Source of the DNA: Podarcis bocagei
Taxonomy: Eukaryota
DNA: 64,000 bases
Reading direction: 5' to 3' (one strand)
NCBI GenBank assembly: GCA_964188305.1
Contig: OZ076886.1
The notes beneath the pieces were generated by a model. That model saw only the letters and a list, made by a program, of their open reading frames with translations. It did no database searches and was not told the DNA's origin. The position numbers and the translations under genes are program-made. Below are positions 1 through 51,807 of the stretch, piece by piece (position 1 is the first letter of the stretch; the number at the start of each line of letters is the position of its first letter).

Positions 1-294
1 CAGCGGACTGCTTGCCGGCATGCAGAAGCTTGGGGCGCGCTGACCTCAGCTTGCCCCAAGCTTCTGGATTAGCGCAGGGGTCCGCTAGCCCTGGGAGAGG
101 CGCCCGGCTCTCCCACGCTAGCGGAGACCTTGCCGGCATGCAGAAGCTTGGGGCGCGCTGAGCTCCGCACGCCCCAAGCTCCTGGTGTAGCGCAGCGCAC
201 CTGGGGGGGAAATAAAATTTTTTTCCTTTATTTCCCCCCCTAAAATCTAGGTGCGTCTTATGGGCCGGTGCGTCTTATGGGGCGAAAAATACGG
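1..294 (-). mobile_element. CCGTATTTT-ended (Tc2-like) MITE, partial, with 118-bp hairpin repeats
   Basis: Ends ...GAAAAATACGG|TA; reverse complement matches the left end of the copies at 25629 and 29783. Confidence 0.8.
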
Positions 295-9380: not shown

Positions 9381-10233
9381 TGTGACAGAAAAGTTTGTTT
9401 TTCCTAGGGCTGGTTGGGCCCCCAAGTATTTTCTTTTTCTTTTCCCCATGCCAGAAAAGGATTAATGTATGACAGCCTCTGATTGGCTGAGGTTCAGGGT
9501 GGGGAGTTGAAAAGGAGAGGATTTGGAGAAAGGGAGGGGGTTTTGGAGTAGGTTGGGATTGAGGGTGGGAGGATAGGCAGGAAGAGAGGGAGTGAGAGTT
9601 GGTTCTGGGTAGAAGCATCCACTCTGAGGAAAATATCACAAGCTAGAGAAAGAAGTCTCTGAGCTTAGTGTGAAGGAAAGTGTGTGGTGTCCTGTAAGAG
9701 TAATTAGGCCAGGAATTAACTGGGAGGCTGAGGCTGAGCCAGAAGAAGTAGAAGCCGTGAGAATACAGTCTACTTAGGACTCATTCCAGTCAGGAGGGGA
9801 GATATTCTTCTAGTATTAGAAGACTCCCAAACCAGTGAAACCTTGGGTCTATTACTTGGAGTACCTCAGGAGTAGGGTTGTCTAAGGGGTGTGTAACTGA
9901 TAGAAAGTACCACCTTGTTAAGAACCAAAGTATTAAGTGTGAAACAACTGAGAAAACCTTGAAGTGAAATAACATTGCAAACTGAAGTATCCTAAGTTTT
10001 ATCCACTCGTGTCATAAACTTCCTTGTTAAATAAAATCGTTATTGTTTATTTGAACAAATCCTGCCTGAGACTCCTAATTATTAAGTTTTACCTCATGCA
10101 AGTCCCCCACAAGATAATCTGAGGCAGTTTGAGGGAATTTGTGGAAGTGGTGTTCTGTGAGGTGGGCACATTCTATTTTTAAGTGAGTGCGCCCCAACAG
10201 CGCCAGGGGAAAAAGGGCCACCGCGCCGTCGCA
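9381..10233 (+). mobile_element. Solo LTR (853 bp)
   Basis: TGTGAC...GTCGCA termini, 5-bp TSD ATAGC (9376-9380 and 10234-10238), ATTGG box at about 9482, AATAAA at about 10030, no internal coding region. Confidence 0.8.
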
Positions 10234-10420
10234 ATAGCCAACCCAACAAGATCCCACTGCTTCCTTATACAACAAGGAGTGCTCCACTGAGAAATGGGAG
10301 GAATAGCACCAAAGCACTACTACAAATAGAGTCTACCAGTTCACACAACCTTCAGTTTTGATATGCCACTGCTATCAATACAAAACTATAAAAACTTGTT
10401 GCAGTAAGCACATTACTCAC

Positions 10421-10582
10421 ATTCATCACAGAGTTAATCTCAGCCACAGCATCATCATCCGTGGGGAACTGATAGATCTGGACTCCATTGCTAACCAGTT
10501 CGCTCATGATCTTAATCTTAAACTTGTGCAACTCGCTCTTGGAAATGGTGTCAGCTTTGGCAATTATAGGGATAATGTTCAC
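10421..10582 (-). CDS. SEPTIN8: Septin-8 exon 5 ([12 protein letters not shown]...EINSVMN)
   Basis: 162 nt, CAG/GTGAGT; G4 motif AKAD. Confidence 0.97.
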
Positions 10583-11043
10583 CTGCAAAAGAAATAAAAC
10601 CAATGGAAGTATTTCCCCCCCCGAAAGAGTTTTGGAGGCCTGTCATTAATTGTACTGTGTTAAGGATACCAGGGTCCCCCAACCTCATTTGTATAAGCAC
10701 ATTAAATTAGGTCTCCGCTCTTCTTTAATATCCCGTTGCCACCAATCCACCCATTTCAAAACCTCCTAGTAGTGCGTATAGTTGAAATTAAGTTAGCCCT
10801 GTTCATTAATTTCAATAGGTCTACTCTTGAGTAAAAGCTAACTGAATACAAGCTGTCTGGAGCACCAGCTAAGAGCAGAATGTTGCTTAGAATTGTGAAT
10901 GCAATTCTGTCACATCAAACAGTTGAACTAGCAAGTGTTACCACTCAAGCATGGAGTAGCCACCCTTGGCCACAGTGTATTCTCTTGCATTCGGATAGCC
11001 AAGGAAATTTACATTATTCTTCCAAGTATTATTAATGTACGTA

Positions 11044-14507: not shown

Positions 14508-14891
14508 AAATAAAAAAATTCCTTCCAGTAGCACCTTAAAGACCAACTAAGTTAGTTCTTGGTATGAGCTTTCGTGTGCATGAACACTTCTTCAGATACA
14601 CTGAAACAGAAGTTGCCAGATCCTTCTATATAGTGAGAAGGTGGGGAGGGGTATTACTCAGAAGGGTGGTGGGAATGGGAGATTGGCAGATAGCTGAGAT
14701 GAGCCTGTTGACGACTCTTAACGACTGCAATAGGTCTTACAGGAAAAGGCAAGGGGTGAGAAGGTGAAAAATGGCTTAGTCATGTATAATGAGATAAGAA
14801 TCCAATGTCTTTGTTCAGACCAGGTCTCTCTATGGTTTTAAGTTTGGTAATGAGTTGCAATTCAGCAGCTTCTCTTTCCAGTCTATCTGTA
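14508..14891 (-). mobile_element. Penelope-like element 3' fragment (GIY-YIG C-terminus + pLTR-type tail)
   Basis: Minus frame DRLEREAAELQLITKLKTIERPGLNKDIGFLSHYT* resembles the PLE endonuclease end (R..AE...I..L.T..P.GLN); flanked by 15-bp direct repeat ACTTTAATCAGAACA (14493-14507 and 14892-14906). Confidence 0.85.
14562..14599 (-). ncRNA. Minimal type-I hammerhead ribozyme motif within the Penelope tail
   Basis: Minus strand GUAU-CUGAAGA-A-GUGU(ucaugc)ACAC-GAAA-GC-UC^AUAC: CUGANGA and GAAA boxes, stem I GUAU/AUAC, stem II GUGU/ACAC, UH cleavage site. Confidence 0.75.
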
Positions 14892-17446: not shown

Positions 17447-19487
17447 CTGAGAAATTCCAGAAATAAGGAGATGCATCATGGTCTTTTCCCCCACTAAATA
17501 TTTCTCATGATTTCAGAACAAATGGATTTCAGGGAGTTCGCAATAAAGACCCTTTGATTTGTCTACAGCTTTCTCCTCAAAGGCTTCTAACAAACAAAAC
17601 AAACCTTCAGTATGTGCAACTCCTCAATCTCTGTTAAAACACAGATGGTGTCTCCCACCTCCCACCCACTTCCTTTGTTTTAGGAGCAAAAGGCAGTATT
17701 ACTACCCTTTCTATAAACATGCCACTTTCTTTTAAGTTCGATCCTCTGTGCTGCTAAGCAGCCATGGGCTAGCATTGCTTTTCCAGACATAAAACTGAAA
17801 AGAGCAGCAAGATGTGAAGACTAATAAGGGAAAGGTTTACAGAATGTCAACACGATCTCTCCGCAACCCTATAGGAAACTTCCAATGTTCTAATTATGGG
17901 CAAACTCCCCTTGAGAGATCATGAATCAGTGTGGAATAGTGTAATAATTTCAATCTAGTCTGGATATTTGACAGATGGCAGAGCACCAGAAACCCCTGGG
18001 CTGGAGTATGATGCAAGGACATGTTGCAAGGAGAGCTGGCAGAGCAAATGGGAAGTGAATCAGGGAATACTTGCTCCTGGCTATGGCTGGCGGCTACCCA
18101 AGCTTGTGAAATAGTGGAGCTGTTTTGTCAGAGAGGCAATGAAGTGTGGGTATATTTTGAAACATGAGTTAACAGAAAGCTTTCGAGGCTGGCCCAGTCC
18201 CATTAGTAACTGAGATTCTATCAAGACATTCCAAGCCACAGAAAGGGTCTTTATATATTTCTTTTGATTTATGGCCTTTAACCTTAATCCTTCCTGCTTG
18301 CCCATACTGCTGCCTACGCAACTACAGTATATGCTTAGTCTTCCTCTCAGAATCAATGTCGATCATCTTTATTTTGCTACATTAATCTGAGGTGAATGGA
18401 GAACAGAGAAAGGAATTCAGCATTATTGGGGGTTTCCTTAAAATCAAGGTCAAACTCTTCTTTTCTGAAAGCACATATCCAAATACCATCCAGCTACAGG
18501 CTTAGAAAAGCAGGCCTTGGAGGTCTGAACAACCTTTAAAACTACAGGTTATTCCAATAATAAGGATAAAAATATCCCAATTCCACCGCTCTGTTTCTTT
18601 AAGTCCCACCACAATTACGATCATTTGCTCCCCATTTGTTCTAGTACAGAAAATAAATGATGCTTCCCTGGTTAAATAACTTAGCTGATTAGAAAGATGT
18701 GATGTGAAAAATAAAGGGGAAGGGGAAACATACCAATGAGTGCGACAAAATCACACAGAAGTTTTTGTACACACCTATAGCTCTCAGCAGAGACCTGGAG
18801 TATATTAAATTCTCTCCTGAGCTATTCTGCTAAGCAGAAACCATGAGCACATAGAACAATGTATTTAAAAGTATTTTCCAGTACTCGCCAGATTGGACTG
18901 GGAAAAATTATAATTAGCACAATAAGCATTTATGGAATTTTTGCTGCAGCTAAATCTGCAAAAAGAAAAGAAAGAATTTGGCCTTGTAGGTTGCCTTCTG
19001 GAGACCAAAACCTGTTCCCCAGCAATCATATGCATGTTTCAAAAATTGAAACAAAGATCAAAGGCCCCAATTATCATTGCCAGAAGCAAATTATTCCAAT
19101 CCGATTCCAATCTAACCACCGTGACTTCAATGCTCCCTGTGAAAGTCATAAGATAGGGGAGACAACTCTATCAAACTATGGAGGGAGAAGGCAAGTAAGC
19201 AAGCCAGCAGCTTCAGCAACAACATATGGTGCAAGCCACCCAATCCTGTATTCACTGAGTTTTATTCTAACCAATGGTTGAATCTCGTAGGAGCAGGTCC
19301 AGCCATTAGAAATGCAAGCTACCTGAAAATCCAGCTTCTTAACGTGACTTTTTCACAGTTGTGAAAGCAATGTATAAGTCATGGCCTTCATCAATATCAC
19401 AGGGAAACCCAGTCATATAGAAAGCAAGCAAAGCCCTTACCCCACTAAAAAGGAAAAAAAAGGGTGAATGGTGTTGAAATCCTATTA

Positions 19488-20433: not shown

Positions 20434-21313
20434 CTGCAGGGGGGGGGGGAGGAAAAGAGAATGCTATTATTTAGCAGGGGTTTTCTGAAAGGAAGTTAGC
20501 AGAAACTGGAGGTGAAAAATATAAAAGCCATAAACACACTACCATTTCCCTTGAAACCAAGCAGACTCCCTAGTCACAGAAGCAATCCTAGCACTGCCCA
20601 CACAGAGGTTTATTATGTTTTTATATGCCACATTCCAGACATACTGGTAATTATAGTCAAGCATCAGAAAAAAGGGGGGGGGGAGAGAAACTCTCCCTGA
20701 TCTAACAAGGAATTGTCTTAAAGAGACAGAAGGCTTCAACTGTGAAGCCATTTCAAAAGGAAAACCAACACACAATTGGATCCGGCGGCTTTCACTGTGC
20801 AAAGGAGTAGGCGGGGGAGGGAAGAGACAAATTCGCATGTTTTATTTATTACTTTCTTAATCCTTTCATTTTCTAAAGTCTCCTGCATCTGAATCGTGTT
20901 AGCCAAGGGGAGCAGCTTTGGGAGCTCTTGATCTGTTTCCTTTGAATCTGCCATAAGCAGCTTTGTTCACCCGCACTCCTGAAGGGGGGGCGAAGGTGGT
21001 GGGGGCTGCACATCACTCACCTCACCATCTGCGACCGCACTAGGTTTTCTTGTTACGGTGGTATCTTGGGGGTCTTTCTACACTTTCCATTTATAGTGGG
21101 ATAGTTACTGTTTGAGCCGGTGGTTTAAAGAGTGAGTTTGGTAGCTGACTGTCTGCACCTTTGCTTATATGTCACTATTATTAGAGGGCGAGGTTTTCCT
21201 TTCTACATCAAAGGTAGGCTATGACCAAGTTGAGAAAAGTTCCATGGCTGTAGGTCACACCCCTAATACCGCCTTGCGCTCCTCCAGCCAGTAAATGGAG
21301 TTATAAGCATGTA

Positions 21314-21748
21314 CAGTGGTGCCTCGCAAGACGAAATTACTGTATTTTTTGCACCATAACACTCACTTTTTTCCTCCTAAAAAGTAAGGGGAAATGTCTG
21401 TGCGTGTTATGGAGGGAATGCCTACGGGTGGCATGCCTATGGATTTTCCTCCTCTAAAAACTATGTGCGTGTTATGGTCGGGTGCGTGTTATAGAGTGAA
21501 AAATACGGTAATTCGTTCCGCGAGTCTTTTCGTCTTGCGATGTTTTTCGTCTTGCGAAGCACGGTCCGTTGTAACTGCGCCTCTTCAAGCGGCTTTAAGA
21601 AAAAAGCGAACAAACTCGCAAGACGTTTTCATCTTGCGAAGCAAGCCCATAGGGAAATTCATCTAGCGAAGTAACGCAAAAACCGAAAAACCCTTTCGTC
21701 TAGCGAGTTTTTCGTCTTGCAAGGCATTCGTCTTGCGGGGCACCACTG
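21314..21748 (+). mobile_element. pogo/Tigger-like MITE (CAGTGGTGCCTCGCAAGACG TIR), host of nested insertion
   Basis: TA TSD, TIR pair, repeated internal CGTCTTGCGA motif. Confidence 0.88.
21340..21508. mobile_element. Short Tc2-like MITE nested in a pogo/Tigger-like MITE
   Basis: TA|CTGTATTTTT...AAAAATACGG|TA interrupting the host sequence AAAT-TA-ATTCGTTCCG. Confidence 0.85.
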
Positions 21749-25628: not shown

Positions 25629-26692
25629 CCGTATTTTTCGTCCCATAGGACGCTCCGTCCCATAGGACGCACCTAGTTTTTTTGGGGGGAAATAAAGGAA
25701 AAAATTTTTTCCTTTATTTCCCCCCCAAAAGCAGGTCGGGGAAACCGAACCAGGTTGAGGAACAGCGGGATGGCGGTGCTGCGCTTCCCTGCTTTCCCCC
25801 GAGCTTGTGGGGCTGGCCGATGTCTGCCTGGCGCGAGGGGCGCTCTGCTTCAGGGCGCCCCTCGCGGTGGGCAGCAGGCTGCTATCCGCAGCGTGGGGAG
25901 CCCTGCGGGGAACTCCTGCAAGGCTCCCCACGCTGTGGATGCCTTCCTGGCGCGGGGGGCGCTCTGCTTCAGGGCGCCCCACCCGCTGGGCGGCAGGCTG
26001 CTATCCGCAGTGTGGGGAGCCCTGCGGGAAACTCCTGCAAGGCTCCCCACGCTGCGGATGTCTGCCCGGCGCGGGGGGCGCTCTGCTTCAGGGCGCCCTG
26101 CCCGCCGGGCGGCAGGCTGCTATCCGCAGCATGGGGAGCCCTGCGGGGAACTCCTGCAAGGCTCCCCACGCTGCGGATGTCTGCCCGGCACGGGGGGCAC
26201 TCTGCTTCAGGGTGCTAGGCCCGCCGGGAGGCAGGCTGCTTCCGCAGCATGGGGAGCCCTGCGGGGAACTCCTGCAAGGCTCCCCACGCTGCGGATGTCT
26301 GCCCGGCGCGGGGGGCGCTCTGCTTCAGGGCGCCCCTCGCGCCAGGCGGCAGGCTGCTATCCGCAGCCTAGACATCCCTGCGGGACCTCCCGCAGGGCTG
26401 CCTAGGCTGCGGATGTGTTCCTGAAGCGCCAGGCACTCTGCTTTCAGGGCGCCCGACGCTCCGGGAAGCAGGCTGCTATCCGCAGCCTAGACAGCCCTGC
26501 AGGACCTCCCACAGGGCTGCCTAGGCTGCGGATGTCTTCCTGAAGCCTGGAGGGCGAGAGGGGTCGGTGCGCACCGACCCCTCTCGCTCTCCAAGCTTCA
26601 GCAAAAGCCTGCATTCACCCCATAGGACGCACCCAGATTTCCCCTTCATTTTTGGAGGGGGAAAAGTGCGTCCTATAGGGCAAAAAATACGG
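25629..26692 (+). mobile_element. CCGTATTTT-ended (Tc2-like) MITE with six 118-119 bp GC-rich tandem units
   Basis: TA|CCGTATTTTTCG...CAAAAAATACGG|TA; subterminal CCCATAGGACGC repeats; unit starts at 25819, 25938, 26057, 26176, 26294, 26412 and 26531. Confidence 0.9.
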
Positions 26693-28664: not shown

Positions 28665-28890
28665 CAGTGGTACCTCGGGTTTCATATGCTTCAGGTTACA
28701 GACTCCGCTCACCCAGAAATAGCACCTCGGGTTAAGAACTTTGCTTCAGGATGAGAACAGAAATCATGCTCCGGCGGTGCGGCAGCAGCAGCAGGCCCCA
28801 TTAGCTAAAGTGGTGCTTCAGGTTAAGAACAGTTTCTGGTTAAGAATGGACCTCCAGAACGAATTAAGTTCTTAACCTGAGGTACCACTG
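28665..28890 (-). mobile_element. pogo/Tigger-like MITE (GGTTAAGAAC family), inserted in an L2 3' tail
   Basis: Reverse complement of the 19488/29002 copies; TA TSD; flanks 28577-28990 align with the L2 tail at about 45200-45370. Confidence 0.88.
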
Positions 28891-29001
28891 TATATTATGT
28901 ATTTTGTGTTTGCATTTTGCATTTTTATGTAGTAAACTGCTCTGCAACCTTTGGGTGAAGGGTGGTTTATAAATTTAATAAATAAATAAAAATGCAACAT
29001 A

Positions 29002-29259
29002 CAGTGGTACCTCGGGTTAAGTACTTAATTCGTTCCAGAGGTCCGTTCTTAACCTGAAACTGTTGTTAACCTGAAGCACCACTTTAGCTAATGGGGCCTC
29101 CCGCTGCCGCCGCGCCACCGGAGCCTGATTTCTGTTCTTATTCTGAAGCAAAGTTCTTAACCTGAAGCACTATTTCTGGGTTAGCGGAGTGTGTAACCTG
29201 AAGCGTATGTAACCTGAAGCGTATGTAACCTGAAGCATATGTAACCCGAGGTACCACTA
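29002..29259 (+). mobile_element. pogo/Tigger-like MITE (GGTTAAGAAC family)
   Basis: TA TSD, TIRs, expanded 15-bp GTAACCTGAAGCGTAT-type repeat near the right end. Confidence 0.9.
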
Positions 29260-29782: not shown

Positions 29783-30382
29783 CCGTATTTTTCGTCCTAT
29801 AGGGCGCACCGGCCCATAGGACGCACCTCGTTTTTTGGGGGGGAAATGAATAAAAAAAAAATATTTTCCCCCCCTCCACCCTGGCTGCCGCCCCAAGCCT
29901 TGCGCTCACCTGCCCGAAGCACGGGGCACCCTCCGGAGGGCTCCCCGTGCTTCGGGCAACAGGCTGCCGCCCCAAGCCTCGCGCGCTTGGCGGGACCTCC
30001 TGCCGGGCGTGCAAGGCTTGCAGACACTCGCCCAAAGCACGGGGAGCCCTCCGGAGGGCTCCCCGTGCTTCGGGCGACAGGCTGCCGCCCCAAGCCTCGC
30101 GCACCGGGTGGGACCTCCTGCCGGGCGCGCAAGGCTTGTGGACACTCGCGGGGGCTGCAGGCTGCTGCCCACAAGCCTTGTGAGCCCGTGGGAACTCCCA
30201 CCGGGCTTGCAAGGCTTGCGGATAGCTTCCTGAAGCCTGGAGAGCGAGAGGGGTCGGTGCGCACCAATGCCTCTCGCTCTCCAGGCTTCAGCGAAAGCCT
30301 GCATTCGCCCCATAGGACGCACACACATTTCCCCTTCATTTTTGGAGGGGAAAAAGTGCGTCCTATGGGGCGAAAAATACGG
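29783..30382 (+). mobile_element. CCGTATTTT-ended (Tc2-like) MITE with about 2.5 hairpin units
   Basis: TA TSD, TIRs; right-hand ~150 bp nearly identical to the 25629 copy; unit period 118 bp (29913 to 30031). Confidence 0.9.
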
Positions 30383-45999: not shown

Positions 46000-46167
46000 C
46001 AGTGGCGTAGCGTGGGTTGCCAGCACCCGGGGCAAGGCAAGTAATTTGCGCCCCCTAGCCCGTGGATTTGCGCCCCCTAACCCGTGGATTTGTGCCCCCT
46101 AACCCTAACCCCCAGATGTTGCGCCCGGTGCGGCCAGCCCCCCTGCACCCCCCACGCTACGCCACTG
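46000..46167 (+). mobile_element. hAT-type MITE (CAGTGGCGTAGCGTGGG TIR)
   Basis: Perfect 8-bp TSD CATAGATG; three internal ~21-bp repeats. Confidence 0.92.
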
Positions 46168-47518: not shown

Positions 47519-48798
47519 AGTAAAAGCCACTAGCAAACAGAAAAAGCTCACTTTTGCTTCTCTCTGTTATGCACTTCAAGTTTCGAGTTGCGTAAGTAAT
47601 CGCAGCAATATATTGGCAGCCAACTATGTGGGTAATACTTCTGCTGAGCATCTGACTTCCCCGCCCAGGAATTATTAAATCGAGGACAGGGAACCTGTGG
47701 TCCTCCTGACTCCAACTCCCATGAGCCCTGATCATGAGCCACGATAGCAGGGTTTTTTGTTTTTTTAAAAAGCATATCTGGAGGGCCAAAGGTTTCCCAC
47801 TCGATTAAGATTAAATGCACCGAGAAGAATCCCCTTTGGGCGACAGCTGGTTCAGAATGAAAGAGGCTCATCTCTTTGAGATCCTGCACACAACATCCAC
47901 AAGAAACAGCCCCTGTTTTCAGTGCGACTTGCTCAGAGGTGAGCAGAGGGAGTCGAGTCCATGCAGACATGCACAGGACCCAGCTGCAAGGACCCTTTTT
48001 TGAATTGCAGCTGCTGTTTCCATTCCTGAAGGCCAGCTGCCCATCTCCTGCCGCAGAGACTAAACAAATACTGCAGGGCAGGGCAAAAAGTCCATCGGAA
48101 TGGGAAGATCCCCGATGCCTCGGAAGGAGAAAGTCGGCTGGTGGGTCTTATCCGACTACCTACGACAGTCCACTCCTTGGGTGCAGGCCACATGTATTAA
48201 AACGCTGCGGCAGCCTTGGCACCTGGTACAGCTGTACAAAACCCATAGAGGATTCCTCCCCCCCCCCCAGGCTGCAACCCTACCCAGAAATAAGCCCCAC
48301 TGAATTTGGCGGGGCTTACCCCCAGGTAAGAGGGGTGGGAAACGCAGCCTTAGCCCCCACGCTCCCACAGAGTCGCGCCGAGGACTACAGGTCCCCACCA
48401 TTCCAGTCCCTCCATCGCCATCTATCCTGGCAGAAAGGCACAAGCCCCCTCCCCACCCTGCCAAACGCGTGTTTCGTGGCGGAGCTGGCAATCCGGTGAG
48501 TAAGTGACAACACGCCTGCCTGCTGGAGAGTGCGCCGAGACGCGCAGCCTCTTCTGCAGAAGGCGGCGACTCCCTTCCCCGGGAGATCCCTGATGCCCCA
48601 GGCTCAGCCCAATTCAGACGGGCAGCCCCCGCGCGGCCCGGAGTCCCGTCCCTAAACTCCCCCACGGCGAGCCCTTTCCCACGGCGCAGCCCCCGCCAGC
48701 CCGGGTCTCTAAGCTCTTGGAGGGAGCGGCGTGCGCGCGGCGCCCCTGCCCTCCTGGCTAGAGACGAGGCTGCTGCTGCTGCGGCTGCTGCTACTCAC

Positions 48799-48828
48799 AG
48801 AGAAGCGCTCCAGCTCCGTCGCAGCCAT
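48799..48828 (-). CDS. SEPTIN8: Septin-8 coding exon 1 (MAATELERFS)
   Basis: Minus strand reads GCC-ATG GCT GCG ACG GAG CTG GAG CGC TTC TCT|GTGAGT. It has a Kozak-like start and a phase-0 donor, matches the SEPT8 N-terminus (MAATDLERFS), and lies in a CpG island. Confidence 0.93.
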
Positions 48829-49182
48829 GGCAGGGAGATCCGGGGGCCGAAGGGCGAAGGGGTTCCTGCTCCTGGGGCTCTAGCAAGCCGTCTTGCCGGG
48901 AACCTGCTCCTCTCCTCCTGCTCCTCCTCCCTGGGCTGAGGCAACTGAATGAATCCAATATGGCCACTTCCTGGAAACTCCCCCTTCTCCGGCTGGGGAG
49001 GACGCGGGACGCCGCCCTCGCCCGGGGCGCCGTGGGGCGGCGAGGAGCTGGCGGAACCGGGGAGCCCGCTCGTCCCACGGAGCCTCGACGCCCAGCCCGT
49101 CCGGCAGGAGAACGCCCCGCGAATGGGAAGGGGGAAGGCGGCGGCGCCGAACCGCAGCTGCCCGGCGTGCGCGGTCCGGAGA

Positions 49183-49204
49183 AGGATGCTGGGAGTTGTA
49201 GTCC
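49183..49204 (-). promoter_or_regulatory. ZNF143/THAP11-type SBS motif GGACTACAACTCCCAGCATCCT
   Basis: Close match to the ACTACAnnTCCCA(G/A)nATGC promoter motif, next to a CCAAT box at the upstream edge of the CpG island. Confidence 0.7.
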
Positions 49205-50055
49205 GGGGCTTGATTGGGTCGCTGCGGTTTTCGGGCGGGTAGAGCTTTCCTTCCAAGCGATTCCCAGGTATCAGCACAGAGATCACTGCCGCCTAACCTA
49301 CCTCACAGGACTGTTGTGGGGGTAGCAGGGGGAGAGCGGGAAGCATGAGACCCCCCCGGTACAGGGTGGTATATATATTCAATAAACAATAATAATAATA
49401 ATAATAATGTACGCCGCCTTGAGCTCCTTGGAAGAAAAGGTGAGCTACAGAGGCAATAAAGAAAGAGACGCATAAAACGTAAGCACCTTGATATTGTGCT
49501 CCTTTCTCTACCTTGCTGGGAGGGGAAGAGTGGCTTGTCTATAACACCATCCACTCCAACCAGATGTCCTTTAGATCTTGTTAGATCACAGCTCCCAGTA
49601 TCACTCAGCATTGGCCATGTTGGCTGAGACTGGTGGGAAGTGGAGGACCAAATCGTCCTGGAGGGTCACTTGGAGCGCAAAACATATGATGTTTCCTGGG
49701 AAGAAAGCAGCACTGGATTTATCACTCTGCAGGTGGTTCCCCTGCACCAGGTGCTGAGCTGAGGGGGCGCAAAATGGAGAAGATCCATTTGGGGGGTGCC
49801 AGATTTTGGGCTCTCTCGGGGCACCATATTATCAAAGATTACCAAAGTCCGCCCCTGAAGGAAGCCCCAATGAATTAAAGGGGGCTCATTTGGAATAAGA
49901 GGGCAGCCTTTGAGAGCGACTGGAAGTTTTCAATCAAGGGTGTTCCCATTTGTTGACTTATTTGCAACAGTCGCACAACTCCACTTATTGTTAGCCACTA
50001 TGTTGCACCAAGTATTCAAAAGTTCTGTGGGCTCATAGGAACGCCAATCCTACTA

Positions 50056-51635: not shown

Positions 51636-51807
51636 CAGTGGTGTAGCGTGGGTTGTCAGCACCCGGGGCAAGGCAAGTAATTTGCGCCCCCTAACCTGTG
51701 GATTTGCGCCCCCTAACCCGTGGATTTGCGCCCCCTAATCCTAACCCCCAGATGTTGCACCCAGTGCGGCCAGCCCCCCCCCTGCACCCCCCCACGCTAC
51801 ACCACTG
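51636..51807 (+). mobile_element. hAT-type MITE (same family)
   Basis: Perfect 8-bp TSD ATCTCCAT; both TIRs read CAGTGGTGTAGCGTGGG. Confidence 0.92.

Follow-up and report, generated by a model that had tools for sequence, protein, structure and literature searches.

Arm copying is favoured over a selected fold in the covarying two-hairpin minisatellite of a Podarcis Tc1/mariner-type MITE

The stretch of DNA analysed here, hereafter the window, comprises 64,000 nucleotides of contig OZ076886.1 from the Podarcis bocagei assembly GCA_964188305.1. It contains a septin gene on the minus strand, with a P-loop motif near 17447 and an AKAD motif near 10561, and six occurrences of a 12-nt terminus, CCGTATTTTTCG, where 0.06 would be expected (at most one mismatch, 64-kb window). 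These six termini delimit four elements, E1 to E4 (Table 1), of which the three array-bearing copies lie upstream of the septin GTPase P-loop exon, probably in an intron. The original prediction had recognised three TA-flanked elements with common termini, and the terminus search bears this out and adds E4, at 21341-21510, as a fourth copy. TA stands at both sides of E2, E3 and E4 and also follows position 294, the visible end of E1, which is of the 'left' type by BLAST. The site into which E4 inserted is the central TA of a palindromic site in another repeat family (window 21300-21560).

Table 1. Positions of element termini, elements and internal features in the window.
Feature	Position	Strand	Remarks
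CCGTATTTTTCG terminus sites	283-294(-), 25629(+), 26681-92(-), 29783(+), 30371-82(-), 21497-508(-)		pattern search, at most one mismatch
E1, inverted, truncated by window start	1..294	-	left end = 195-294; ~1.7 units of 118 bp at 1-190
E4, diverged relative, 170 bp, both ends, without array	21341..21510	-	TA-inserted within another repeat
E2, complete MITE, 1064 bp	25629..26692	+	TA target-site duplication at 25627-28 and 26693-94
E2 left terminal inverted repeat and two subterminal CCCATAGGACGC[AT]C repeats	25629..25672	+	
E2 A/T-rich palindrome, part of shared end region	25679..25730	.	26-nt arms, 96% complementarity, loop absent
E2 GC-rich spacer preceding array, single-copy	25746..25822	+	homologous to 106-bp tandem unit of P. 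lilfordi copy
E2 array, six tandem units of 118-119 bp	25819..26530	+	per unit: hairpin A, CAGGCTGCT linker, hairpin B
E2 terminal 'T' palindrome	26537..26604	.	34-nt arms, 91% complementarity, loop absent; present in E3 too
E2 right end	26605..26692	+	subterminal repeat, small hairpin, right inverted repeat
E3, complete copy, 600 bp	29783..30382	+	TA at 29781-82 and 30383-84
E3 interior	29908-30143		two 118-bp units, then third unit without hairpin A; T palindrome 30225-30298

The element ends are short and well conserved. Terminal inverted repeats measure ~27 nt, with arms 96% alike within one element, and the ends, which contain subterminal copies of a 14-nt motif, are 84-88% identical among the window copies and 86-94% identical to those of a copy from P. 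lilfordi. Between the array and the right end, both E2 and E3 carry the T palindrome. Open reading frames across the elements matched no Pfam family and are repeat read-through. On the strength of the TA duplication, the over-represented shared termini, the similarity of the ends and the open reading frames without a Pfam domain, the family is, by every feature tested, a non-autonomous Tc1/mariner-type (Stowaway-like) MITE. A foldback architecture was not found: the array units are all direct and the short inverted repeats are unique. The terminus pattern had no match in a scan of viral sequences. Two non-lizard eukaryote-like metagenome contigs (L001:6029-6325 and L002:466-785) contain array-less MITEs that share this terminus and the subterminal motif, which indicates that the end design is old and widespread.

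Within the three larger copies, the interior is occupied by tandem units of nearly constant length. In TRF, E2 (25819-26542) has a 119-bp period, 6.1 copies and 88% matches, E3 (29912-30149) has a 118-bp period, 2.0 copies and 90% matches, and in E1 (1-200) the best self-offset is 118 at 83% identity, the runner-up reaching 39%; the periods of 118, 118-119 and 118 originally proposed are thus confirmed. Unit lengths in E2, taken from the listed unit starts, are 119, 119, 119, 118, 118 and 119, and a 237-bp higher-order repeat that we considered for this array fits no better (84% vs 88% for 119 bp; TRF). Copy number differs from element to element, at 6.1 in E2, ~2.5 in E3, at least 1.7 in E1 and 0 in E4, and no array monomer occurs outside the elements within the window. 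Among the E2 units, units 1-4 are mutually 86-94% alike and unit 6 is the most divergent, at 76-77% to units 1-4. All three stretches proposed as array-bearing elements (1-294, 25629-26692 and 29783-30382) hold as such, with the qualification that E1 is inverted and truncated, that the third unit of E3 is without hairpin A and that the stems are imperfect.

Each unit consists of two hairpins of ~22-28 pairs. This result was obtained with span-limited DNA folding, since global minimum-energy folds pair neighbouring units together and are uninformative. Local folds show hairpins alternating in all three arrays, in keeping with the predicted layout of hairpin A, linker and hairpin B, and the CAGGCTGC linker and three hairpin-B stem versions are as earlier described. 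Hairpin centres are spaced 63/56 in E2, 62/56 in E3 and 59/59 in E1, and the fold z-score is -19 for E3 and -9.5 for E1. The arrays are 68-72% GC; that of E2, 724 bp long with a GC content of 0.72 and a CpG ratio of 0.63, has the sequence characteristics of a CpG island (>200 bp, GC >50%, CpG obs/exp >0.6). The CpG ratio is 0.71 in E3, 0.73 in E1 and 0.16-0.31 in the flanks. These data identify the interior as a CpG-rich minisatellite, each of its units being a dimer of two ~45-60 nt quasi-palindromes.

The common period raises the question of whether the units share a geometry or an ancestor. Aligned in 122 columns, all units from E1, E2 and E3 stay in register from start to end, with A opposite A and B opposite B. 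This full-unit pairing removes a suspicion, raised by a BLAST resemblance of E3 hairpin A to E2 hairpin B, that non-homologous hairpins had been compared. Against a null of unit shuffles that preserve base pairs and composition, homology between E3 and E2 units stands at z = 6-7 (0/1000 structure-preserving shuffles) and between E1 and E2 units at z = 3.9-5.6 (at most 1/1000), and that between E1 and E3 is weaker (z = 1.9-2.7). The alignments and the shuffles show that the three arrays go back to a single ancestral two-hairpin unit of ~118 bp, and the period common to E1, E2 and E3 is thus mostly explained by shared ancestry of the unit. The three arrays nevertheless agree within 1 bp despite their unlike partition (59/59 vs 63/56), which is mildly more regular than random indels would suggest, albeit in a small sample.

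Comparison with P. lilfordi argues against a fixed period. A 20.6-kb locus (L003), found through a match to an ORF-derived protein, carries two family copies, both with TA at their flanks. The copy with the same ends as the window elements lies on the minus strand at 10036-10916 and has a different interior, also palindrome-rich, with tandem periods of 106 and 55 (2 x 106, 2 x 55). Its 106-bp unit is homologous to the single-copy spacer of E2 at 25746-25822 (score 46 vs a null of 17.6 +/- 2.3, 0/500), so that differing segments of a shared interior were amplified in the different copies, each with its own period. Constancy of the period across the family, as first proposed, is therefore not upheld, and on the copies compared the 118-bp period is not a family-wide rule. 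Of the broader proposal that geometry is retained while sequence turns over, the persistence of the hairpins stands, but the equal period is mostly ancestry. The second copy at this locus, 918 bp long and TA-flanked (L003:5862-6779), belongs to the E4 subfamily and has an unrelated interior with palindromes of 66-73 nt.

The two arms of each hairpin change together. In hairpin A (10 sequences, three elements), both sides are changed in 13/24 pairs and 87.1% of cells are paired, against 40-50% when the partner is slid by 1-3 columns, which also gives at most 6 double-changed pairs; the observed values were reached by 0/500 shuffles, a control that ignores relatedness, a weakness from which the slid-partner control is free. 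In hairpin B (9 sequences), both sides are changed in 10/26 pairs, although 3 of the 10 come from an ungapped MAFFT shift and are better read as a mirrored 1-nt indel, and 89.9% of cells are paired vs 33-46% with slid partners. The claim that stem sequence is replaced on both arms together is borne out by these counts, and the covariation is strong, with 87-90% of cells paired vs 33-50% in the slid-partner control; with four array-bearing copies examined, the counts represent few independent events. The stems are imperfect, 10-13% of cells being unpaired. Unit identity is 58-65% between E2 and E3, 50-56% between E2 and the full E1 unit and 46-48% between E3 and the full E1 unit. Since identity of the ends is 84-88%, turnover is much faster in the interior, which nonetheless stays paired.

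Several features of the hairpins point to copying at the DNA level. In five independent hairpin lineages the palindrome continues across the centre and the loop is absent (the E2 A/T palindrome, the T palindrome, E3 hairpin A, one E1 hairpin and the GAATTC-centred P. lilfordi hairpins), and a rough binomial for 5 loop-less among ~16 lineages gives P ~0.002. Because a folded strand needs a loop, loop-less palindromes are not something that structure alone asks for. The A/T hairpin of E2 contains a 6-nt insertion, missing from the other three copies, complementary to the earlier loop, which it converts into stem, and a 1-nt indel is mirrored across both arms in each of the three B hairpins of E3. 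In the T hairpin, what is the right arm in E3 is the left arm in the P. lilfordi copy, where it is paired with a new downstream reverse-complement copy; one surviving arm has served to rebuild a hairpin on its other side. Double changes are transversional in 18 cases and transitional in 9, and single changes within arrays comprise 26 transitions and 9 transversions (Fisher p = 0.002). With double changes mostly transversional and single ones mostly transitions, the former do not look like two independent point mutations. Differences within arrays affect the CpG-rich stems (10-26%) and hardly the linkers (0-5%), and they are mostly transitions, half of CpG type, and uncompensated. Compensated changes are found mainly between copies or among old unit variants, and decay mainly within arrays.

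We favour arm copying by template switching, together with slippage, over selection on a fold. Arrays would expand and contract through slippage or unequal exchange between units, and DNA synthesis through a hairpin would at times switch template from arm to arm, by quasi-palindrome correction or template-switch mutation, so that the arms stay complementary. A single switch could transfer substitutions and indels between arms, and the same copying could produce loop-less palindromes and new hairpins from an old arm. Inserted copies would then decay by ordinary CpG transitions without compensation. Switching may occur in gap-repair synthesis after excision, which would place compensation mostly between transposed copies. 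The hairpins would then be a by-product of mutation mechanics, possibly of gap repair after excision, and not a selected fold. We hold it to be probable, with moderate confidence, that the family is a lizard Tc1/mariner-type MITE with an inherited two-hairpin minisatellite whose arms are kept complementary by template switching and slippage, with no selected fold. The covariation is the interesting part of the system and is best explained by mutation mechanics. The original prediction had offered structural selection or arm-to-arm template switching with unit amplification as alternatives; switching fits the data better, and selection on folded RNA or DNA fits them less well.

A folded DNA interior might instead be under selection among elements, if copies able to form hairpins or cruciforms transposed better, for instance because their ends were brought together or because they survived gap repair; descendants would then come only from lineages that retain the stems. 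Loop-less palindromes readily extrude as cruciforms, which counts for this explanation, as do the packing of every GC-rich copy examined, P. lilfordi included, with hairpins ~50-63 nt apart and the conserved positions of hairpins in the end regions. The compensated changes between transposed copies and in old unit variants, alongside uncompensated decay of arrays in place, are also predicted by selection acting on the transposing lineage alone. E4, however, a 170-bp copy from a diverged subfamily, is without a strong interior hairpin, and in the 918-bp P. lilfordi copy of the same subfamily the interior is different and contains palindromes. Broken stems did not prevent amplification of units, as hairpin A of E2 units 2-4 has uncompensated transversions in common, and a copying mechanism is required in any case for the mirrored indel, the rebuilt hairpin and the loop-to-stem insertion. 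We regard selection on a folded interior as possible, if unlikely. It is quite unlikely that selection on the active lineage has kept a ~59-nt two-hairpin module, as a folded interior for efficient mobilisation or repair survival, and that the family thereby spreads CpG-island-like minisatellites in lacertids, which could turn into first exons or promoters, a role hinted at by three P. muralis protease gene models with their start in such an array, or into hairpin-RNA loci.

Alternatively, gene conversion or recombination could move whole hairpins among units and elements, drawing on a library of already palindromic modules, in which case the arms would change together because the module is replaced entire. 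Two versions of the middle stem of hairpin B do behave as old alleles across elements, E2 units 1-4 resembling E1 and units 5-6 resembling E3; unit identity between elements is 47-64%, against 84-88% for the ends, and lizard non-autonomous elements commonly recombine with one another (PMC3014272). Such exchange only shifts the question to why each donor module is palindromic, leaves the loop-to-stem insertion and the one-arm hairpin rebuild unexplained, and does not match the scatter of double changes along stems, which are not limited to whole-module swaps; we consider it distinctly improbable. Selection on RNA structure, with the arrays transcribed, for example in the septin pre-mRNA, as hairpin RNA or as microRNA or siRNA precursors, draws on a stem length (22-27 bp) that suits small-RNA precursors, on the strength of the arm covariation and on the location of copies in or near a transcribed gene. 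The copies, however, lie in both orientations relative to the septin gene, several hairpins without any loop would be unusable by an RNA hairpin, and the double changes are mostly transversional. Mismatch cells are balanced between G·T and A·C (32 to 26), so neither strand is favoured, unlike what RNA would predict. No Rfam family reached its gathering score anywhere in the window, and the sub-threshold matches in the arrays are to generic microRNA models, on both strands, at 20-35 bits vs cut-offs of 62-106. On these grounds RNA-level selection is very improbable. Arm copying with slippage remains the explanation that we prefer.

Template switching has been reported to leave several compensatory changes at once, loop-to-stem conversions, stem insertions and perfect new stems (PMC8794818, PMC5453318), and quasi-palindrome correction is established in yeast (PMC3820800). 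All of the features for which these processes account, namely perfect stems, multiple compensation, loop-to-stem conversion and stem insertions, are seen here (PMC8794818, PMC5453318, PMC3820800). The known cases, unlike ours, come from rRNA and microRNA genes, human mutation clusters and yeast reporters (PMC8794818, PMC5453318, PMC3820800), and we found no description in the literature of template switching in transposon-borne minisatellites.

MITEs that carry tandem repeats internally, in copy numbers that vary, are established and have been proposed as satellite seeds; among them are miDNA4, Xstir, DTC84/pearl and Tetris (PMC12628747, PMC12054243, PMC3879986). The architecture was thought to be undescribed, and this stands for the covarying two-hairpin unit only, as MITEs with satellite-seeding internal repeats are well described (PMC12628747, PMC3879986, PMC12054243): the Podarcis family belongs to a kind of repeat-carrying transposon that is already known. 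Units of two long quasi-palindromes with covarying arms are not described in these papers, where the nearest counterpart is the conserved 12-nt palindrome of DTC84. miDNA4 of Xenopus tropicalis (Scalvenzi and Pollet 2014), as summarised in PMC12628747 and PMC12054243, is likewise a vertebrate Tc1/mariner MITE with a TA duplication and an internal repeat that ranges from one monomer to arrays, and is a proposed satellite seed. In the same summaries it differs in being AT-rich (63% AT) and 300-600 bp long, whereas the Podarcis arrays are 68-72% GC, CpG-island-like and made up almost wholly of two quasi-palindromes; hairpin units and arm covariation go unmentioned in those summaries (PMC12628747, PMC12054243). 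Xstir, also from Xenopus (Hikosaka and Kawahara 2004), resembles the Podarcis family in that its tandem repeats derive from a MITE interior and that a stem-loop during replication is invoked for their growth, as summarised in PMC12628747. As described there, that stem-loop forms between neighbouring elements and arrays occur also outside elements, whereas in the Podarcis window arrays are found only inside elements and the unit is two hairpins.

DTC84/pearl of bivalves shares with the Podarcis elements flanking modules around up to five core repeats with ordered variants, and each repeat contains a palindrome proposed as a hotspot of length change (PMC3879986). It differs in its AA target duplication, its 12-nt sequence-conserved palindrome and its microsatellite module, and arm covariation is undescribed for it (PMC3879986). 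Foldback-type elements (Drosophila FB; Tetris) are similarly structure-rich and non-autonomous, with repeats that seed satellites (PMC4079207 as cited in PMC12628747), but they have long terminal inverted repeats of opposed tandem repeats, unlike the ~27-nt inverted repeats and direct array of the Podarcis copies. Closer in host, the TcMar-N families of the lizard Anolis carolinensis are also non-autonomous, have TA duplications and lack a recognisable autonomous partner, and recombination and incorporated DNA make their structure highly variable (PMC3014272); the ends of one of them resemble a Tc2-related frog element (PMC3014272). Compared by description only, they differ in that hairpins, palindromes and internal tandem arrays are unmentioned in PMC3014272.

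It is recognised that transposons can give rise to satellite DNA by way of MITEs with internal tandem repeats, and to this route the Podarcis family adds a clean vertebrate case, with a unit that is nearly only two long quasi-palindromes and homologous units that can be aligned base by base. The array offers a natural record of the birth, correction, extension and amplification of palindromes in a vertebrate germline. Thousands of copies genome-wide could yield the rate and footprint of template switching against CpG decay, and would make the need for structural selection testable. CpG-island-like arrays could affect the annotation, and perhaps the regulation, of neighbouring genes. Translated open reading frames of the elements matched Podarcis proteins only (five matches). 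Three P. muralis models of trypsin-like serine proteases (UniProt A0A670K7T9, A0A670KC09 and A0A670K7R9) open with 55-90 residues translated from an E2-like spacer and A/B array; either a MITE array here provides the first coding exon or the start site, or the models reflect an annotation artefact.

Elsewhere in the window, at 28845-29047, two inverted copies of a different lizard MITE-like repeat form a long hairpin, for which MIR530 is the best Rfam match (56 bits vs a cut-off of 85). The stretch at 14562-14599 matched neither the hammerhead ribozyme nor any other Rfam family at gathering score, and a scan of the window for bacterial promoters and terminators gave nothing, the bacterial models not being apt to a lizard genome. 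A 22-bp unit is repeated 2.7-2.8 times at 46044-46105 and at 51680-51738, 5.6 kb apart, and these sites are probably two copies of another element. The most GC-rich stretch in the window, at 48001-50000 (GC 0.59), may be a CpG island.
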